A DNA stretch of 64,000 nt from the NCBI GenBank assembly GCA_965285935.1, contig OZ260664.1, positions 76,322,001-76,386,000 of the forward strand, in the 5' to 3' direction. This document shows positions 10,614 through 30,192 of the stretch, piece after piece. The DNA is from Ophelia neglecta. Taxonomy: Eukaryota. How positions within the stretch are numbered: position 1 is the first letter of the stretch; every line of letters begins with the position of its first letter. The notes under the pieces were generated by a model that searched no databases, had not been told where the DNA came from, and saw nothing but the letters and a program-made list of their open reading frames with translations. The translations under genes and the position numbers were made by a program.

Positions 10614-13600
10614 ATGGAACTGTTCAATGTTCTGTGGGTTTTCGGTATAGTCGCTTCGACAGGTAAGTAAATGTTGATTAACATGCAGTAACACACGTAC
10701 AGCAGGCGATAGTTATAGTCAGCTGGTGTAATGTATACCTTAATTTTATTATATTAGTAAAGATAGTTATAATGATAGTTGTCTCGAACATTCTGAAAAT
10801 TGGTCGAGATGCATGTGTCCGCATGCATAAGACATAAACACGTCTATAGGCCTAGTACCAAATTATGCTCGCTTCAGGTGCCTCCCCCAGGCCCCGTTCA
10901 TGTACTCTTCTAAATCAGTAGTCAGAATATTAATTTCCTTAAAGTTTCCATTTACAATGATTCATTAATTACTTTGTTTTAATAATTACCATCTATAGCC
11001 ATGTGTAATATATTATGTTAAAATGAACGACCTTCAACATATGGAGGGGAATTTTCCTCATATTTAAACAATAATAATGCAATATCAAATATTAAATATA
11101 AAACATTTAATTTGCATTTGAACGCTTTAATAGCAAACTGCTGAAGTCAAGCACGGATTGTGCAGTATGGGATGAGGAATATGGAAAATTGAATTGACGG
11201 AGGAAAACTATAATTGGCAACTGTTAAAATGAAATGGATAACTTTGGTAATAAAGACGTCATATTAAACACGTATCATTGTACCCTAAACCGGACAAATC
11301 AACAGTTCAAAATGAAATTAAAATTAAATATATTAATGGTGATTAACGGTAGGCCTGTACGTATTCCAGATAAAATATTTCAATATCTACATTGGCTCTT
11401 CGAATGAAGAAGCTTTCAATGTCATTTGAAATTACAGTAGAATTCCCTTCCTGTTTTATCATCCAGGCACGAGTAAAGTGTGGCATTTAAAAAAGGCAGC
11501 TATAAACCTGAAACTTTAAAATGTACACGGAATATTAGGCATATATATATTTACGAAAATTTCGACCAATGCACGTCCTCCGCTTGATGAATAGAGCGAG
11601 GTAATTTCCCTAACGAGAGATAACCGATAACTTATTTTACGAGAATAATCAGCCAATTTTTGAAGCTGCCAAGATTTATGTATACCGAATTGTAAAATCA
11701 AGCGGTGACGTTCTATCATATTCTATCTTTATTATCTACTTCGTAACGACACTCCAATGGAGCGCGTTCTGTTGTCATGTGGTCCGACTCCCGGCACTAT
11801 ATAGGCCTAACGAAATTAATGTGTCAAAAGTGCACGCTATTGATGCCGTGATCACATATACGGGTTACAAAAGGTAGGCATATCCTTTCCCACACGCTAT
11901 GAATTTAGCATGCGTTAAGGTTTTTAATTAGTGTATATTTTCCAATTTTGCAGTTACAAATGGCGGACGCGCCTTGGACGAAATTGTCGAACTTGCCTTG
12001 GTCAAAATTTCAAATTATCATACTCGAATATTTTCGGTTTACACACAAGTTTGTTAAAGCTTCATGACGCATGTTTAAATTGCCTGTTTAAAGTCGAGGC
12101 TTTAGAAAGATGGATTATGAAACGTGTTATTACTTTCAAGTGGCCATTGAAAACTACTTTATACTAAGAGCCAAAGCCAATATTGGAATATTTCATCTGG
12201 AGGCGTACCGTCAATCGCCATATAAAAAAGGAATAATATGTTGTATTTTTTCTGGGTTTAAAACTAAATTGAACGTATTTATTCACTCAAGTTATTATAG
12301 TTTTATTTCAAAAAATGGCAATTAATGATTCAACTGTCAATTTAATATACCATATGTTATATTTCATATTATACATTCCATGTTTAATTTCAACAGTTGC
12401 TATTTAAAGCTTTCAAATTTAAATCTAATATTCCATATTTAATATTTCATATTGCATTATTTGTTTAAATATGAGGTAATTTATGATTTCTCGCTGTCAG
12501 TGATCAGTAGTTTGGGAGAAGTGCCCAAGAATACGGCAGCGATCCTGGGCTCTGCGGTACAGTTAAACTGCAGTGGCCCAGCAGTGAAATGGTTTAAGAA
12601 GCGGGACTCCGGGCAGGACTCCCCGTACATCAGCATCTCTGAAAACGGAGTCGTAGCTGCGCAATTTGCATCAGAATTCACCATCGTGTCCACTCATCCC
12701 GACGAGCGACATCTGCTGGTGAGTTCAGCTCAGTTACAACATGATGGAAGTTACAGGTGTGAAATGGGACAAGAAACTGCTGATGCTGAGCTGGTCATAA
12801 TAGGTATTATATTATTTACTAACTGCAAACCCGTGGCAGCAGGAGTTACCTTTTAAACAAATGAATGACCCTCCAACTTCTCTGTCCTCAACTCTTCCAC
12901 TCCTGCCCCCCCCCCTCCTGCCCCACGGGCCCCATTCCTCCCACTCCCCCCTACCGCTCCTGCCCCGCCGGGGTCCTTCCACACTATCCCCCCGGCACCC
13001 TCGATCCCTTCCACTAGTAGCCCCTCCCATCCTGCTCCGACCTATCCCCTCCCCATTGGCCCCCTCTCTTTCACTCCTGCCAACACTGCAGTGCTCTTCA
13101 GCCTTCAGCCTCAGTAGCACAAACTTTAACACGGCACCTGACAATAGGTGCACGATGTATGTAAACCTTCCTTTTGATCTCCATGGCTGGTATTTTCAGA
13201 GAGTGAGATATGTGGTAAGGGCAATTTAACTTAGTCGCTCTACAAATGTGTAGTATTATTTATTTTGATCAATTAATGTGTGAAAGACAAATTCCATGGG
13301 CGAAACCGGTGTCAACACGGGTTATCTTTAAAAGAAATGGATGAAAAATAACAGTGGTTCATTTACCCCCAAGTCCTTTGACTCGCAATTTTCCAAAAGG
13401 ACTCGCAATCTTGCACCGAAGCAATTCAGATGACTCACTCACACGATGGGTTTATAATCACATTGAGGACTCAATCACTGTTCATAAGGACTGAAATTTT
13501 GTATCCCCATCGTGGCCTAACATTCCTACATCCAAATTTCTAAAAGAATTACTGAAATAACCCCCCCCCCCCCGGGCCTCGTAATCCCACTCCTGCATCC

Positions 13601-17060: not shown

Positions 17061-18285
17061 ATGGTTAGTTTTTTTAATGACAATTCCGTCGGATAGCCAT
17101 CTGTGGAACGGATATGTAAAAAATCATTCGTCCTCATTCCTGTGTTGTTTGAACGCTGGTGACAACCCAAGATAACAGTTGGACCGCCAATGAAAAACAC
17201 TGAATGACACACCTTAATATCAAAGCCGTAGCTCATGACCCACATGTCAGCAGTGGAAGCAACACATTTATACTTTTGTGCGTGTAGTCAAGGCGACACG
17301 TTATTACTTATCTTTTTCAGCTGTCAAAAAAAGAAACCTAGGCAAATTTTGTGATTAGTTGTAGTCGTTCTAAATCTGCAATCGGTCTCAGTTCGGTGAT
17401 TTAAGGTTTTGTACAGTACTATTATATATAAATATTTACTGATGTTAAATAACAAAGTTTGAATAAAAGCTGCAAGTCTTTTTTGAATCCGCCACTGATA
17501 ATGTATTATGCACACCAAACCCATATATAATAAAAGCTTCTGCAAGAAAATATAATGGCAATTAAAAAAAAACCATATAGCAGACACTAATATTGCATTT
17601 GGTTACCTTGATTGTCATGCATGAGTTAATGTATTGGTAGTTTTAACTCGCGTTTTACCACTTTCTCTACCGAACAGAAATGATAGGTTTTTTCAGCACA
17701 CACAAAAACAACCTTTGAACATGTTGGAGCTAAACTTTATTTGTCTGAATTCACACTGGTTAAGAGAGCCAATAGATGGAATTTGAACGCGAATGTAGAA
17801 CCAATCTATTGTAGGCAATGGACATTTAAAAGTGGCATGTTTTAGTTTGAATAAAGAAGATAAATACAAGAACAAGTTAAACAAAATTGGCACACGTGTA
17901 AGATTTACCTTACATAATACATATTATTAAGAACTCACTGGAACTAACCAGGTTGCAGCGAGATTGGGACTCCAATAGCATAGCAGTTAGTAATAGCTAT
18001 TGGTAGCAGCGCCCCAATTCATGTAAGCAAATAAATAAGTCTATCAGTTCCTGGTTGGGTATATAGCAACAGGGAAGTCGAGCTAGCTGTTACTTTCAAG
18101 TGCAACACCGCATTTGATATTTTTTCGTTTTCAATGTGGCGAGTGACATTTCAAATAAACAACTTACACATGCTACAGGCTATATGCTTCTTAAACTTTC
18201 GACACAATTGCAAAAAAAACCATGCGGCATTAATGACATTCAGAAGAACTTACGATTTGTTATGAAAAGTCCTAACGTAGTGGTT

Positions 18286-23460: not shown

Positions 23461-25150
23461 TTTACTTGACGTCGTGTAGATATATAGAATTCTCAAGATT
23501 ACTGAGAGAATGCATATATAGCAACAGTTTTCTAGGTGCTTTAGATGGAACTGCACTAAATTGAATACACTTAATACCTAATACATGTATATCTTTTCGG
23601 CCTGTAATGGGTCACTTGACATATAATGTATTGTACACATACAAAACATTTTAAGCTGTCTGTAACGTAGTGGAGACCGAGGGCTATTGAAGGAAACTCT
23701 TAATTAAACATATCGTCCAACTATAATGCCAAAAAAGCATAAATGACAAATATAATCTATATGGCGATTAATATGTCTCTTAATTTTGTACAAACACAGG
23801 TGATATGGATCTTTAAACTGTATATTTATAGGCCCTACATGTACTATATATCATGTAAGGTCAGAAATAGATCTATATTAAGTTATATAACGAGTCGCTT
23901 ATGGCCTTTTTGGCGATTCAGATAGAGTAAAAACGGAGACGCCCTTTAGGTTTTTGCGAATCTGAATCGCCAAGACCATGAGTAACGTCATTTAGTCGAA
24001 GACTACTAGTATCAGCCGGCGCTCTGAGGTTGTAATATGCCAAGTTATTAGATGTGCGCAATAGGAGTAGTGGACTAAGTAAAGATAAAATGCATTTACT
24101 TAATATCTTACAATCACACGGGATGTTATTTTAGATCAAAACTTTCATCCTCAGTATATAAAAGGGCAATGGTTTAGAACTATGCACCTCATGTATAGAA
24201 TCCCTTGTAACTTTTTGACAACATTTCAAGAAATAGAATGGCATCCGTGGTAGTTGCGAACATGCATGTTTATTTTGTCTTTCATCATTCAATTCCTAAA
24301 GTGCTTACAATATTGCTTTGCCACAGTGAAGAGCAACTAGAACAACATCAATATAGTAGTTAGTATGAACAGAAATTTAAATACGAGCATCTTTGTAAGC
24401 CAAAATTACTGCTTCTCCGTGCCACAATGTACCGAGCGCCGGCACTGCGTTTAAGATTATGCATTGTTACAAATAATATTTTGATGTGATTTTATTCTAC
24501 TAGAAAGAACATACACCCACAATCCATTGTAAACACCTAGAACCTGGGATCGAATCCGTACAGTGGTGTGAAGCACGATTGAGAACGCCAACCCTCAAAG
24601 AATTTTGATATTATAATGCCTAAATTTCTTTTTTAGAGTAAGTCATGCGCTAAAAGGGTTCATCAGCTTATGCTAACTATACTGTGAATGATGGGTAATG
24701 ATAAGAAACTTGGTACTCTTCTCAGGGTTATAACCATTGATAAGTTATGAATTTGAAATGTTGAATTTAAGAAAACTTGGTAATTTTCCGAAAGGTCCTT
24801 CTTTACCACTTGGTCTGATATTAATACCCGCCGCTTACAGCTGCAAAAATGTTCAGATGTTCATTTGTTTTTAAGCAGAAAAAAATAAAAATAAAGGAAT
24901 ATGTTTTGTTGTTTAATTGTTTAAGCGCCGAAGGAAACAAAACCAGTCAAGTTACGCTACAGATGTTGCAACTACTTGCTCCCGACCACATGCACTGCTT
25001 TCAAACGTTCGGTTATATACATGCATCGCTAACTACATAGATTAATTTAGGACAGTAAAAATAAGTCCCGAAAAAAAATATATATACATGTATTTGGTAA
25101 ATCACGTGTGTATATGCTGACATTGCTAATGGAGAAGCTTCTGTTTTCCA

Positions 25151-28100
25151 TTATTCGATTGTTTGAGAATAGAGCTCCACAAATCTTTGGACAAAGGTAA
25201 GATAGTCTGTGACAAAACTATTCAGAATTATCAGTGACCGGATGTCGGTTTGTCTTTTGGTGTCTTCAGAGTAGTATATTACTGAACTTATTCGAGTGTG
25301 ACCTCTGGGGGTGAGAGAAGTCTGTCGCATCAGCCTCGCGTGAAGTTGATTGAATGCGCAAAGCATACGAGCCACGTAAATGTCATGCAATTGGCGGGCT
25401 TCTTCCTCAAATGTAACAGAGTGAGCCTGTTGTGTCGATAGGGAAGGTCTTGTTGCTCGGATTTGTTCATCGATCTTTAAGTAGTTGATGAACATGGAGT
25501 ACACCATCAATTCTTCCCTTAACACGGTCCATGTGAAATTATATGGCTATAAAAGTGTCGACATTGGCTATAACATACTTTTATTAGCCTGTGCTCTTAT
25601 TGAAATACATAACGGTATTAAATATTGATTAAATATTGAGCAATTAAAATTAAATTAAATTTAAAAGTGTTTACCTTGTAAACACATTAGACAGCAATTC
25701 TTTCAAAATCAAATAACTCGATACATGGCCTTAGCCTTATTTTATTGTTTCAAATATGTATCGTTGATGATTGGAGCTCGATTATAAAAGTAAACTTGCC
25801 ATTTCAAGAGCCTGTGACACCGATGTGCTGTTTGGGTTTAACTTATGAACGTACGGCCAATGGCTAGCCAATACCTCTTCCTTTGTCCTTTCATCCGCCT
25901 CGGTAAATCTCGTTTGCAACTGTAAAGATATTTAAAAATATGTTGATCTACTGAGCCTCATCACTTTGCTTAAAACCACATTGTTTACATTATTCTGCAT
26001 TTATTGTTTTTCTGATAAATTTGATTACAAAATGGATGCTATTTGTCACAAGCAAGTATACTATTGATTTGACAAGTATTATATGAAATGGTAAATACGT
26101 GTAATATCTTAAATAACCAAACTACAGAACGCAAAATATCCTGTCACATTGGCAAAGAAAGCTTTTGATACCTTCACAATTTCAGCATAATTATTTACCA
26201 CTAAATAGGTATCTCATGGCAGCCACAACTAATCATGTTATATTCAATGCCATGAGCAATGAGGCAGTCTTGATTTTCTTTCTAAAATAACTCAGCGATA
26301 CCCGCACCCCCCCCCCCCCCCCACACACACACACACACTCTTTCTCATTCCACAATCACTAAGAAGTCTAAACCTTGCCCGCAACAGATGACGTGGTCTT
26401 CAGAAAAAGACCAAGTGGGAAAGGGTTATCCAAGTGAGGCTTTTATTACTAACAGATTCGATCCAAATGAATATGTGCCTTAACATACATAAGCGTTAGA
26501 AAAAGATAGTATTGTCAATTTTATCTCAAACATGACACTTGTTAAAGAGCCCCCCAGTGTACTGTCTGTAAAAAACATTACACAACTTACGATCTTTTTA
26601 TCCGGAGTAAATGTAATTTTATAGGTAAATCCTAAGAGGTTTCCTTACATTGCCGAAAAGGACCTTTTAGTTTAAAATTTGGTCATTTTTTACTACAGAT
26701 ACTAAATAAATTCCATCTCATATTTCAAAAAACTAACATTAGAGTAATGTTTCCATACATTTCATCTGTATATCCTGTAATTTTCGTGTCAATAGCACCG
26801 ACTGTCTCGGGGCTAACTGTGCAACAATCACGTGGGGGTTTAACTCAAGACTATTATTAAGCTTTCATTTTACTAATACATGATCTATCTATATTGAAAA
26901 AAACGTGGCAAAGATAACGGCGCACTTGTCCATTTTGGGATGATTTTTAATGTGCAATTGATATTTCTTTAGCCATCCTCTAATGACGATGTGTGGTCAA
27001 TCCGGATGCTGTTACTAGATAATTGACCTCTCCTGCCCAAATTGGTAATAAATACGTCTAGGTACCCAAAATCGAGAGTTGAATCTTTAACATCTAGTGT
27101 TTAGGCATGAGGCAAATCTACCTATTTTAAATGGTAACCATTTACAACTGCACAAGCAGTGATTGCTTTCTCTAAACCCACTCCTACACAGCCTTGTAGT
27201 TTTTTTCCTGGGGAAATGTCATTTCTTTTATAAAAGCTGTTTAAATCGTTCGTAATATTGCGGATATCTGATTAGACTGAAAAAAAAGTCCACCGTATGA
27301 ATGACTCGAGCCATACATATATAGATTGTCTGAAGATAGACTGAAATGTATTTTCTGTTATATTGACATTTGAGAATCGATGTATAGATTTGTATTGGGG
27401 CTGTGGCTGCTGGGTCCTGATGCTTTCGGACAGATTTAATGGACTATATAAGTTGACTATCCACTCCGATCCATATCCTGTTTTAAACAAATAACACACT
27501 TATCAAAAAGAATAAGCAATTATAAAAAAGCAAAGTTTGAAGTATAAGCCAAAAATTGTTTTTGTGTCCAAATATATATTTGCTTTTGGGACGGGGGTGG
27601 GGTGGGGATTGATTGATATGTTTTTGCTTATTTAGCAAAATAAATCTGAATCTTCTATATATATCTTGCAACTTGTAGTGTTATTAGGATGTGTACATGG
27701 TTTTAACAAGTCTACTCGTTGCTTCTCGATCTTCCAATGTCAAACTTGTGGCCTTCTCTTAATATATGCATTTTCATAAACCATTTAAGGCTTTATTGAT
27801 ACTAACGCTTGGTAGATCAAATTCCTTTCTCTTTTGACTTATGTTAAATTTTTGTCTTTAAATCTGGATAAGTTCTGTGCATTTTATGAAGTGCCTGGTC
27901 ATTTCTGAATGGCATTCACTGACATCGTATATTCCCGATTTCGGAAGAAATTGAAACAGATGTGCTTTATTGTTCTCTTTTTGGCATTTTCGTGTTCTAG
28001 CATCTACATCTAGGGGGATACTACAAGACCTTTTAGGAACGTGACTGTCTCTAATCTCTTCCGGAAATTGCCGGTATTTGTTTCCAATTTCCTGCGCATC

Positions 28101-29950
28101 CGCAGTTTTCTCTATGAAACCCCGCAGCGACGTGCGCTGGCATTTTCGAACAAATTTACTGTTTCGTTCTAACTAATTGCTTATTTGTAGCGGTTCCCTT
28201 GTTCCATATTCATTTGGAATTTATGTGACTGTATGCTGTTTTGTTTATATTTAACATCTTGTATGTTGTTTCCATTTCTTTGTTTATATGCATTACTTTT
28301 GTCAGCGATTTTTTCACAGTTTTACTTTAACAATCTCTATTGTTATATTATCATTGCAATATAACATTTGGATATAAGTATCTAGTACATACCTATTGTT
28401 AGTTTTGTTTGCTGGATACACGGAATCTCTAATGTTTTGGCCTCCTGTAGGCGAAACCTGAACAGAATTTTGGCACTTGGTGTGTGAGTGTAATGTCCTG
28501 GTTGTTGGCATGAGAGGATAGATATCTGGGTTGTTACCAGTTTCTGTTTTTCTATAGGAATATGTCGTGCACATGGCTGCATGGCTTCTTGGTCTTACTG
28601 GCTTATATTTACCAGTGGCCCCATGGCCCTAGTTTCTGCATTGTAGTCTCACCGTCTGAATGGCTTGCTAGAGGATTTGTCCCTTTCTCCGATTTTAATC
28701 TTTGGTCCTGACCCCATATTTAATCCCTTGAATTATTAAATATTAAATATAACCACTATACAATAAATTGACGAAAACATTTTTTTTTCAAAAAGCTTGG
28801 AAGAATCAAGGACTAGCCAAAAGTACCCCAAATTAGCTGAATCACGCCTCATTAGGTATAACCTATTGAAAAAATGGCCTCATGACCCATTTTTATCTTT
28901 AATTGAACCTCATCTAATTGTTGATTGTCAATTATGAACGAAGTTGTACCGTTAATTATTTTGTTTTCAACTTTTATTAACATAGAAAGGTTAAAATGCC
29001 CATTTTGGGGTCATGACCTCGGAGAAACGCCCTTAAGGGGAAATGACTGGTTCAAATAAATTATTCGCAATAAAGGTCTTCCTGTGTTCCGTCTACCTGC
29101 ACAAGGTGAACACCCAGGGAATGTCTTCTGTCTATCTGTAGAAGGTCAACTAAGAATAAACTACTAGTCAAAATGATGCTGCCCCCAAGTCAAACTGAAC
29201 TCGGCAAGTCGTCTTACATTTACCTTCAAGTTGTATGTGAAACAGCTAATCCAATTGAAGTGGCAAATAAATGCAATCTTATCCCCCTATACAGTGGGCC
29301 TATTACTTACACTGCTTCCATCGGCCGGGCCTAAGGATTGTTGTCACCAGTTCTTAGTCAGGGAAGAGCAATGAAGCTACTGTACTTATTATTTTCACTG
29401 GTATGGGGAAGAGGTGGAAAAAAACTTACTAATACATCTCGAAGACTAATTGCTCTGGCCACAACTTCCCTCGTATACAACTGGACATTGGCGAGAAGAC
29501 GAAGTACACCGTGCGATCGACCACGAGCGGTACCGGAAGTGATGGCACAAGGAAACACTGGTGGAGTGTAGTCCGTAATTACCTGGCGCATTGTCGGAAA
29601 CCCATTTGAAAACAACACTGGAATTGTCAGCAAAACTCCTGGAAAATAAATGTGTGGTGCATTGAATAGCATGCTGAAATATGGAAAACATTGAATGTTT
29701 ATCTATATTCATTAATCAATTATCAATTACGTAATGATTAAGGCATCACCAAGGTACCCAAGGATTTTAGCAGATATTGGATATTAAACAAGGACTTATG
29801 CTAAAAGTTTTCTACGCCTATAAAATTTAAGAGTTTTCGTTTTTATTAATAGCTTAAATTATATAAATCCACTTAGACTATTAGTCCGTAACACATACTG
29901 ACTGAAGTTGAAAGAAAATACTTACCATAGAGCGTTAAAGAATAAACCAT
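25151..29950 (-). CDS. Secreted 249-aa putative long-chain four-helix cytokine (IL-6/LIF/OSM/Upd-like)
   Basis: Exons 29950-29926 (MVYSLTLY G|, phase 1), 29638-29430 (phase 0), 25919-25800 (GC donor atg|gcaagt, phase 0), 25546-25151; 750 nt in frame. Signal peptide MVYSLTLYGVLLTIPVLFSNG-. Four amphipathic segments: RLLANVQLYTREVVARAISLRDVLL, VLREELMVYSMFINYLKIDE, FEEEARQLHDIYVARMLCAFNQL, DIRSLIILNSFVTDYLTFVQRF. Only two Cys (39, 181). The gene model is well supported; the family call is inference. Confidence 0.7.
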
Positions 29951-29998
29951 GGCGGGATGTTGAAAGTTGTGCCATTACTTCAGCAGTACTGTATTCCC

Positions 29999-30192
29999 TT
30001 ATATACCCTTAACTTGTATATTGAAAACTGATCTCTGTCATCTCATGGTACTAATTTAGTTGAAATTATAGTAATAATGTACTCATGGATACGAAATTCA
30101 TAGGCTCAGTCGCCTAGAAAATGAGCATGTCTCCTTTTTATTCTTGTCTCCATTGGGAATATTTCTCAGAAATAGTAGGTGGACGGCATTCC
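29999..30192 (-). promoter_or_regulatory. Putative cytokine promoter: TATA box plus STAT (GAS) and kB-like sites
   Basis: TATATAA at 30005-29999 (minus), about 50 nt upstream of the ATG in a good Kozak context (cccgccATGg). TTCTCAGAA (TTCN3GAA) at 30163-30171 overlaps GGGAATATTTC at 30155-30165. CATTCC at 30187-30192. Confidence 0.55.

Follow-up and report, generated by a model that had tools for sequence, protein, structure and literature searches.

To our knowledge, the ligand side of JAK/STAT signalling in invertebrates is largely blank outside the Unpaired (Upd) proteins of Drosophila, and a locus in the genome of Ophelia neglecta raises the question of whether such a ligand has been overlooked. 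The gene in question lies on the minus strand of a stretch of 64,000 nucleotides (GenBank assembly GCA_965285935.1, contig OZ260664.1, positions 76,322,001 to 76,386,000 of the forward strand), which we call the window and whose numbering we use throughout, and a preliminary description made from its sequence had proposed the gene as a candidate for an invertebrate cytokine of the IL-6/LIF/OSM family. Molluscs have the receptor, JAK and STAT, and no IL-6-type ligand has been reported in any invertebrate (PMC13203501); current surveys place IL-6-family ligands in vertebrates alone, and it took until 2026 for lampreys to be included (PMC13081863). The analysis presented here indicates that the gene almost certainly belongs to a real, conserved family of secreted helical proteins, and it leans, with a probability that we put at roughly 0.55, towards a long-chain four-helix cytokine-like ligand that signals by way of a class-I cytokine receptor and JAK/STAT. 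That the protein is truly homologous to the vertebrate IL-6/LIF/CNTF ligands, a narrower case of that reading, is plausible, unproven, and put forward here as a tentative possibility.

An intact four-exon gene and its relatives

When the reverse complement was read and translated exon by exon, the locus proved to be an intact minus-strand gene of 249 codons in four exons, with coding lengths of 25, 209, 120 and 396 nucleotides and intron phases of 1, 0 and 0. The exons are as follows:

29926..29950, minus strand: exon 1, coding part (a prediction); ATG plus 22 nucleotides, 25 nucleotides in all (MVYSLTLY plus one nucleotide); start of the putative signal peptide; phase-1 GTAAGT donor.
29430..29638, minus strand: exon 2; 209 nucleotides; ttttccAG acceptor and phase-0 GTAAGT donor; rest of the putative signal peptide (VLLTIPVLFSNG), Pro-Cys and predicted helix A.
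25800..25919, minus strand: exon 3; 120 nucleotides, 40 amino acids; AB-loop segment with the HWPYVHKL-PN motif; GC donor.
25151..25546, minus strand: exon 4; 131 codons plus TAA; ttttatAG acceptor; helix B, BC loop, helix C, CD crossover with a mini-helix, and helix D.

Intron 2 spans 3.5 kb. The preliminary description had set the limits of the gene exactly on these start and stop codons, and the sequence features that it listed are confirmed here; one refinement sets exon 3 at 25919-25800, with a GC donor.

Relatives were sought with two word-indexed searches and with a profile run against 1.8 billion representative proteins. This genome holds three copies of the family, namely the window gene and paralogs at C12:32.81 Mb and C7:41.46 Mb; the C12 paralog (L003) is 38% identical to the window gene over exon 4 in a genome search, and has exons of 75, 38 and 126 codons, all in phase 0. 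The sole annotated full-length relative is P0012, the 236-residue 'hypothetical protein LSAT2_029417' of the annelid tubeworm Lamellibrachia satsuma, whose exons on its own contig are of 70, 38 and 128 codons, again in phase 0; no features of a vertebrate kind were noted in the genome of the window. Lamellibrachia satsuma carries a tandem trio of copies within about 10 kb on L007 (8001-10387; 12552-14171, minus strand; 17070-17465, plus strand), and one neighbouring copy is annotated as a protein of only 150 amino acids, a model that is probably incomplete. The other relatives are almost all open reading frames confined to exon 4 on unannotated eukaryotic contigs, including those of marine metagenomes.

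Exon 3 runs to 25800, because 47% identity with the paralog spans all 40 of its residues. Its donor there is the non-canonical ATG/GCAAGT (25799-25794, minus strand; the slash marks the end of the exon), at a place where the paralog and other family members have GT, and the paralog exon ends with IDM/GTAAGT, matching position 25800 of the window gene; in the paralog and in the annelid gene the exon is 114 nucleotides long. An exon of 15 amino acids ending at the in-frame GT at 25875 was rejected, since conservation runs on to 25800 and the HWPYVHKL motif would be lost. Conservation within the exon is strongest in the 25 additional residues, VLASHWPYVHKLNPNSTSVSQALEM. The region of the HWPYVHKL motif is found in the C12 paralog as well, and HWP[YP][VI] recurs just upstream of exon 4 on the marine metagenome contigs L008 and L009, with RWAPV as the version of the motif in the annelid protein.

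At the 5' end of the gene, two relatives support the phase-1 acceptor of exon 2. One is the C12 paralog, which has a phase-1 ttttcAG acceptor and no in-frame ATG and therefore needs a tiny upstream exon; the other is the Lamellibrachia gene. In P0012 the acceptor lies 2 nucleotides ahead of the annotated ATG, so that the annotated model, too, is missing a tiny phase-1 first exon. Translation from the ATG at 29672, reached through an upstream acceptor, is a less likely alternative, as the paralog lacks an in-frame ATG at this place and depends on a phase-1 exon further upstream. The arrangement put forward in the preliminary description, a tiny phase-1 first exon followed by phase-0 introns, is borne out by the 25-nucleotide exon with its GTAAGT donor and by the two phase-0 introns, and it is likewise found in the paralog and in Lamellibrachia.

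The N-terminus, MVYSLTLY/G VLLTIPVLFSNG, forms a plausible signal peptide that is split by the phase-1 intron. With hydropathy used in place of a dedicated signal-peptide predictor, the N-terminal segment MVYSLTLYGVLLTIPVLFSNG is hydrophobic (Kyte-Doolittle means of 1.2-1.3) with its core in exon 2, which agrees with the signal peptide first proposed, and equivalent hydrophobic N-termini are present in the paralogs and in the Lamellibrachia copies. Long-chain class-I helical cytokines are characterised as secreted proteins of about 150-280 amino acids with an N-terminal signal peptide (PMC13081863), a description that the window protein matches with its 249 residues and hydrophobic N-terminus.

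The three introns of the window gene occupy places equivalent to the first three of the IL-6 family: the first interrupts the signal peptide, the second marks the end of helix A and the third precedes helix B. Human IL-6 has coding exons of 19, 191, 114, 147 and 168 nucleotides with phases 1, 0, 0 and 0, and the LIF and OSM genes also open with a tiny phase-1 first exon. The window gene differs from IL-6 in that it lacks the last intron and encodes helices B to D in a single exon. The equivalent places are suggestive of common descent, in a comparison that carries no statistical test, and an intron in the signal-peptide region with conserved phases has been described for IL-6 genes (PMC13081863).

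Conserved residues and purifying selection

An alignment of exon 2 from the window gene, the two paralogs and the three Lamellibrachia copies shows invariant P, C, G and R-L. Across the members of the family, the Pro-Cys that precedes helix A, the Arg-Leu at the start of helix A and the Trp of the exon-3 motif are invariant or nearly so, as are, in exon 4, E27, T45, Cys63 in helix C, and L108-N109...D114 in helix D, which holds the motif LNSF..D[FY]L. The exon-2 cysteine stands in an FPC context ahead of amphipathic helix A. The preliminary description named a cysteine ahead of helix A and another in helix C; both are present, and they are conserved family-wide in a pattern compatible with a disulfide. 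LIF and OSM likewise have a cysteine before helix A and one in helix C, and a disulfide joins their N-terminal segment to helix C; in the window protein, a corresponding bond would tie the segment before helix A to helix C.

During alignment, MAFFT repeatedly set fragments of helix A (GVLRLLANVQLY, IMRLVNNMIIY, FRRLLNRLLEL) onto helix B (TLRRLLEALMTY). Helices A (29430-29519) and B (25475-25546) have the pattern x-L-R-x-L-L-x-x-L-x-x-Y in common, and this likeness could reflect either chance amphipathicity or an old internal duplication.

Exon 4 shows 71% protein identity to a contig of another species (P0001/L001), to which nucleotide similarity is restricted to window positions 25558-25212, with none in the intron or in the 3' flank. 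The ratio of nonsynonymous to synonymous substitution rates (dN/dS) in this comparison is 0.13 at a dS of 1.39, a saturated value, and indicates purifying selection. Three DNA runs from the same organism as the window reveal four single-nucleotide polymorphisms in exon 4, three of them synonymous and the fourth Met61Leu, and Leu is also the residue found at this position in the protein of the relative; the indels detected in 5 kb are all intronic (9 of 9). The family is fast-evolving and previously unnamed and, judged by its sequence, an orphan.

Predicted fold

The window gene was searched and folded as single exons, and full-length structural work was carried out on the homologue P0012. An AlphaFold model of window exon 4, based on a 17-row alignment, has a mean predicted local distance difference test score (pLDDT) of 79.8 and a predicted template modelling score (pTM) of 0.74, with helices at residues 2-32, 47-72, 80-87 and 97-130. 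The preliminary description had envisaged four helices with long AB and CD loops; helices B, C and D and the CD crossover are recovered in this model, and the packing of helix A is predicted at low confidence in the P0012 model described below. With the exon-4 model as the query, an exhaustive VIA-align search of 48,161 PDB representatives gave the following highest-ranking matches:

Rank 1: IL-11, score 10.4 (root-mean-square deviation 2.3, 111 residues, 18% identity).
Rank 2: COQ7, score 10.2.
Rank 3: CLCF1, score 10.1.
Rank 4: CNTF, score 10.1.
Rank 5: a ferritin, score 9.6.
Rank 6: IL-6, score 9.1.
Rank 7: LIF, score 9.0.
Rank 8: placental lactogen, score 8.9.

In every cytokine match, the model aligned to the C-terminal helices B-C-D and the alignment reached both C-termini, whereas every ferritin-like match used the N-terminal helices A-B-C of the ferritin fold. 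Cytokine and ferritin folds have a three-helix sub-topology in common (up, down, long crossover, down), and differ in the place of the fourth helix. In the present family the fourth helix is N-terminal and is connected through a 35-40-residue segment containing prolines, and the arrangement is therefore that of a cytokine. Sequence identity over the superpositions is 12-22% for IL-11, IL-6 and CNTF, versus 4-11% for ferritins.

The helix peptides quoted in the preliminary description, LREELMVYSMFINYLK and DIRSLIILNSFVTDYL, are both present in exon 4. Its pairing of helix B with IL-6 agrees with the superposition only on the assumption of a gapless alignment and of a presumed IL-6 numbering; model residue 1 then corresponds to IL-6 residue 79, and L9 would pair with I87. 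The corresponding pairing of helix D may be off by one residue.

The AlphaFold model of P0012, for which the 16-row alignment covered the exon-4 part only and had a depth of 1 over helix A, has a mean pLDDT of 65 and a pTM of 0.53, with helices at residues 49-75 (A), 77-140, 153-177 (C), 184-192 (the mini-helix) and 201-232 (D). Its B-C-D part is fairly confident (pLDDT 77-86), and the exon-3 segment is modelled as an extension of helix B despite its conserved prolines. Among Foldseek rows, all of them non-significant, the highest probability fell to human IL-6 for the window model (0.69) and to IL-11 for P0012 (0.89).

A structure search of the ESM-Atlas with the P0012 model yielded nothing meaningful. 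A feature search with P0012 returned named language-model neighbours that are all clusters of long-chain helical cytokines: LIF_OSM (0.91), Hormone_1 (0.90), cardiotrophin-1/CNTF (0.90), a molluscan IL6-tagged cluster (0.89) and Unpaired (0.88), together with further LIF and IL-12 alpha (IL-12a) clusters, with 182-201 of 256 features in common. Because the recognition value for P0012 is low (1801), we treat this list as a lead and not as proof. The molluscan cluster, at rank 12, groups 114 hypothetical proteins, most of them from molluscs and about 229 amino acids long, and 11% of its members carry Pfam IL6; it may represent a molluscan branch of the family or a second, IL-6-like family of invertebrates.

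Comparison with known helical ligands and bundles

Set beside the IL-6 family, whose members are secreted proteins of 200-250 amino acids, the window protein is alike in its predicted secretion and size, in helices of 25-34 residues, in its long AB segment and in its long CD crossover with a mini-helix. It differs in showing no sequence-profile similarity to that family, no cysteine pair of the IL-6 type (Cys44-50/Cys73-83) and no FxxK motif, the LIFR-type signature that stands at the start of helix D in LIF. The assignment to the IL-6/LIF/OSM family in the preliminary description is partly supported: the gene layout, the cysteine pair, the predicted shape of B-C-D and the language-model neighbours fit it, and no sequence-profile link was found.

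Like the window protein, the Drosophila Unpaired proteins (Upd1-3, the ligands of Domeless) are secreted, predicted to be helical and without sequence similarity to vertebrate cytokines; they differ in their length of about 400 amino acids, and the sole link to them is the language-model neighbour at 0.88. Among lophotrochozoans, the helical cytokine-like protein reported to date is CgIFNLP of the oyster, which reportedly signals via a cytokine receptor and JAK/STAT (PMC9756803). It is, however, a protein of about 15 kDa that has been described as class-II (interferon)-like (PMC8218723), whereas the window protein has 249 amino acids and helices of the long-chain class-I kind; on size, in a comparison made by description and not by sequence, the two are unlikely to be the same protein. 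Ferritin-like bundles (ferritin, Dps, COQ7) place the fourth helix on the opposite side of the chain, and in contrast to them the family has a predicted signal peptide and a cysteine pair, and has no conserved metal ligands (no ExxH pattern).

Proposed mechanism and pathway components

If the gene encodes a cytokine-like ligand, the mature protein would be a long-chain four-helix bundle like those of class-I helical cytokines, and its nearest counterparts in shape would be IL-11, CNTF, CLCF1, IL-6 and LIF. Helix A would come from exon 2, a proline-rich AB crossover of 35-40 residues from exon 3, and helices B, C and D, with the long CD crossover and its mini-helix, from exon 4. Once secreted, the protein would bind a class-I cytokine receptor, either gp130/Domeless-like or the orphan CRLF3, and receptor binding would then lead to the activation of JAK/STAT.

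Components that such a pathway would draw on are encoded in the genome: STAT DNA-binding domains (STAT_bind) were found at three loci, and one exon matches Pfam FERM_F2, which we take to be the FERM lobe of the JAK type. The best STAT_bind match (E 1.4e-45; G000:C7:30119457-30119861, L018) lies within an open frame of 795 amino acids without stops, and may mark an intronless, retrogene-like STAT beside two exon-sized STAT matches on C2.

Weighing the alternatives

Several results count against a cytokine-like ligand. At the level of sequence profiles, Pfam hmmscan with exons 2 and 4, and with 16 members of the family, as queries gave noise only at E-values up to 10, with no IL6, LIF/OSM, CNTF or Unpaired; the Pfam models IL6/G-CSF (PF00489), LIF_OSM (PF01291) and CNTF (PF01110), run against the whole genome, had no match at the locus; the Unpaired model (PF15972) had no match anywhere in the genome at E-values up to 10; and a profile of the family found no cytokine among all PDB sequences, its only match, a globin-type one to DosC at an E-value of 0.23, being judged to be chance. 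At the level of structure, Foldseek returned no significant match for either the window model or P0012 (all E-values above 0.1), and the three helices fit ferritin-like bundles no less well. The P0012 model does not form a closed up-up-down-down bundle, as residues 77-140 are one long helix, and its helix A (pLDDT about 60) and exon-3 segment (51-59) are of low confidence. The preliminary description had suggested AlphaFold and Foldseek as a check and expected such a bundle; what emerged is a B-C-D part that resembles cytokines, with neither the closed bundle nor a significant Foldseek match. To this can be added the low ESM-Atlas recognition of P0012 and an ESM-Atlas feature search with window exon 4 alone that gave no usable match. 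With regard to the receptor, IL6Ra-bind and Lep_receptor_Ig were not found in an exon-by-exon Pfam search of the genome, which is insensitive and does not show absence. Finally, a search for RNA evidence found none: the only runs that cover the stretch are of genomic DNA from one sample, and their contigs continue through the introns with no joints.

This last point, and the fact that exon 1 and the GC donor are predictions, would suit a non-functional locus, whether a chance set of open reading frames or a decaying pseudogene. Yet the dN/dS of 0.13 extends over 131 codons at saturated dS, the reading frame is intact in all exons, conservation of the three main exons extends to paralogs and to other phyla, and an independently annotated homologue has the same structure, so that this explanation is strongly disfavoured and hardly credible. 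A more serious contender is a secreted helical ligand or hormone that has a cytokine-like core and is not a JAK/STAT ligand of the IL-6/gp130 type; it might be a hormone resembling growth hormone, prolactin or leptin, or the ligand of another receptor, with a likeness to IL-6 that is convergent or generic to the long-chain shape. Consistent with this, Hormone_1 clusters are as close as the LIF and CNTF clusters in the ESM-Atlas feature search, the exon-by-exon search recovered no gp130/IL6R-type exon, and the FxxK signature is not visible at the start of helix D in the family alignment. We nevertheless consider it unlikely, given that members of the IL-6 family occupy ranks 1, 3, 4, 6 and 7 in the VIA-align search with the window model, that the exons and phases are laid out as in genes of the IL-6/LIF type, and that the cysteine pattern, from N-terminus to helix C, is the one seen in LIF and OSM.

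The protein might also be a helical bundle unrelated to cytokines, be it structural, a carrier, ferritin-like or an extended coiled hairpin, and the cytokine matches would then reflect nothing beyond a common layout of two antiparallel helices, a long crossover and a third helix. That AlphaFold modelled P0012 residues 77-140 as one uninterrupted helix of 64 residues and placed helix A beyond the matched core would accord with such a bundle, and the structural scores all fall below the caution line that the tool sets for helical proteins. The exon-3 prolines (HWPY, PN), however, speak against the continuous helix, which is drawn there at a pLDDT of 51-59, and the fourth helix is C-terminal in ferritin-like proteins but N-terminal in this family, as it is in cytokines. 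Furthermore, the conserved columns (E, T, C, L, N, D) are without a di-iron Glu/His pattern, no ferritin or rubrerythrin Pfam match was found among the 16 family members, and the family has a signal peptide, a cysteine pair, rapid divergence and tandem duplication, as secreted ligands typically do; together, these points render an unrelated bundle improbable. Overall, no other known class accommodates the evidence as well as a long-chain helical cytokine.

Flanking and intronic features

Outside the coding exons, two further candidate elements were noted:

29999..30005, minus strand: TATA-like box TATATAA, 49-55 nucleotides upstream of the ATG, read from the sequence; putative promoter element.
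24912..24917, minus strand: ATTAAA, the first poly(A)-signal-like hexamer past the stop codon, about 235 nucleotides downstream, from a pattern search; putative.

An upstream, out-of-frame ATG lies at 29973-29975 (minus strand), 25 nucleotides before the main start and close to the expected start of transcription, and its inclusion in the mRNA is uncertain. Within intron 2, the segments 26720-26886 and 27388-27554 show contig depths in the DNA runs that are raised about ten-fold (222 versus 19) and about two-fold, respectively, and are probably dispersed repeats; the intron also contains a (C)n(CA)n microsatellite, at about 26300-26340, and contigs break there. Some 12 kb past the cytokine-like gene on its 3' side, toward lower coordinates, an open frame at 12452-12856 (plus strand) has the immunoglobulin-domain signature LNCSG ... 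DGSYRCE, and is probably an exon of an immunoglobulin-superfamily gene.

Implications

The family described here, which BLAST and Pfam fail to detect, occurs in this genome and in an annelid at least. Even if its members are not JAK/STAT ligands, they make up an unannotated, multi-copy family of predicted secreted proteins under purifying selection. Were they true homologues of the IL-6/LIF/CNTF family, the window gene would have kept an ancestral bilaterian gene structure, with a phase-1 intron in the signal peptide and phase-0 introns on either side of the segment that links helices A and B, and the origin of gp130-class cytokines would predate the split between protostomes and deuterostomes. 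The proteins would then be endogenous ligands of gp130/Domeless-like (or CRLF3) receptors in annelids, molluscs and their relatives. Given its gene layout, its cysteines and its predicted shape, the family may supply the JAK/STAT ligand that is missing from animals of the annelid and mollusc type.

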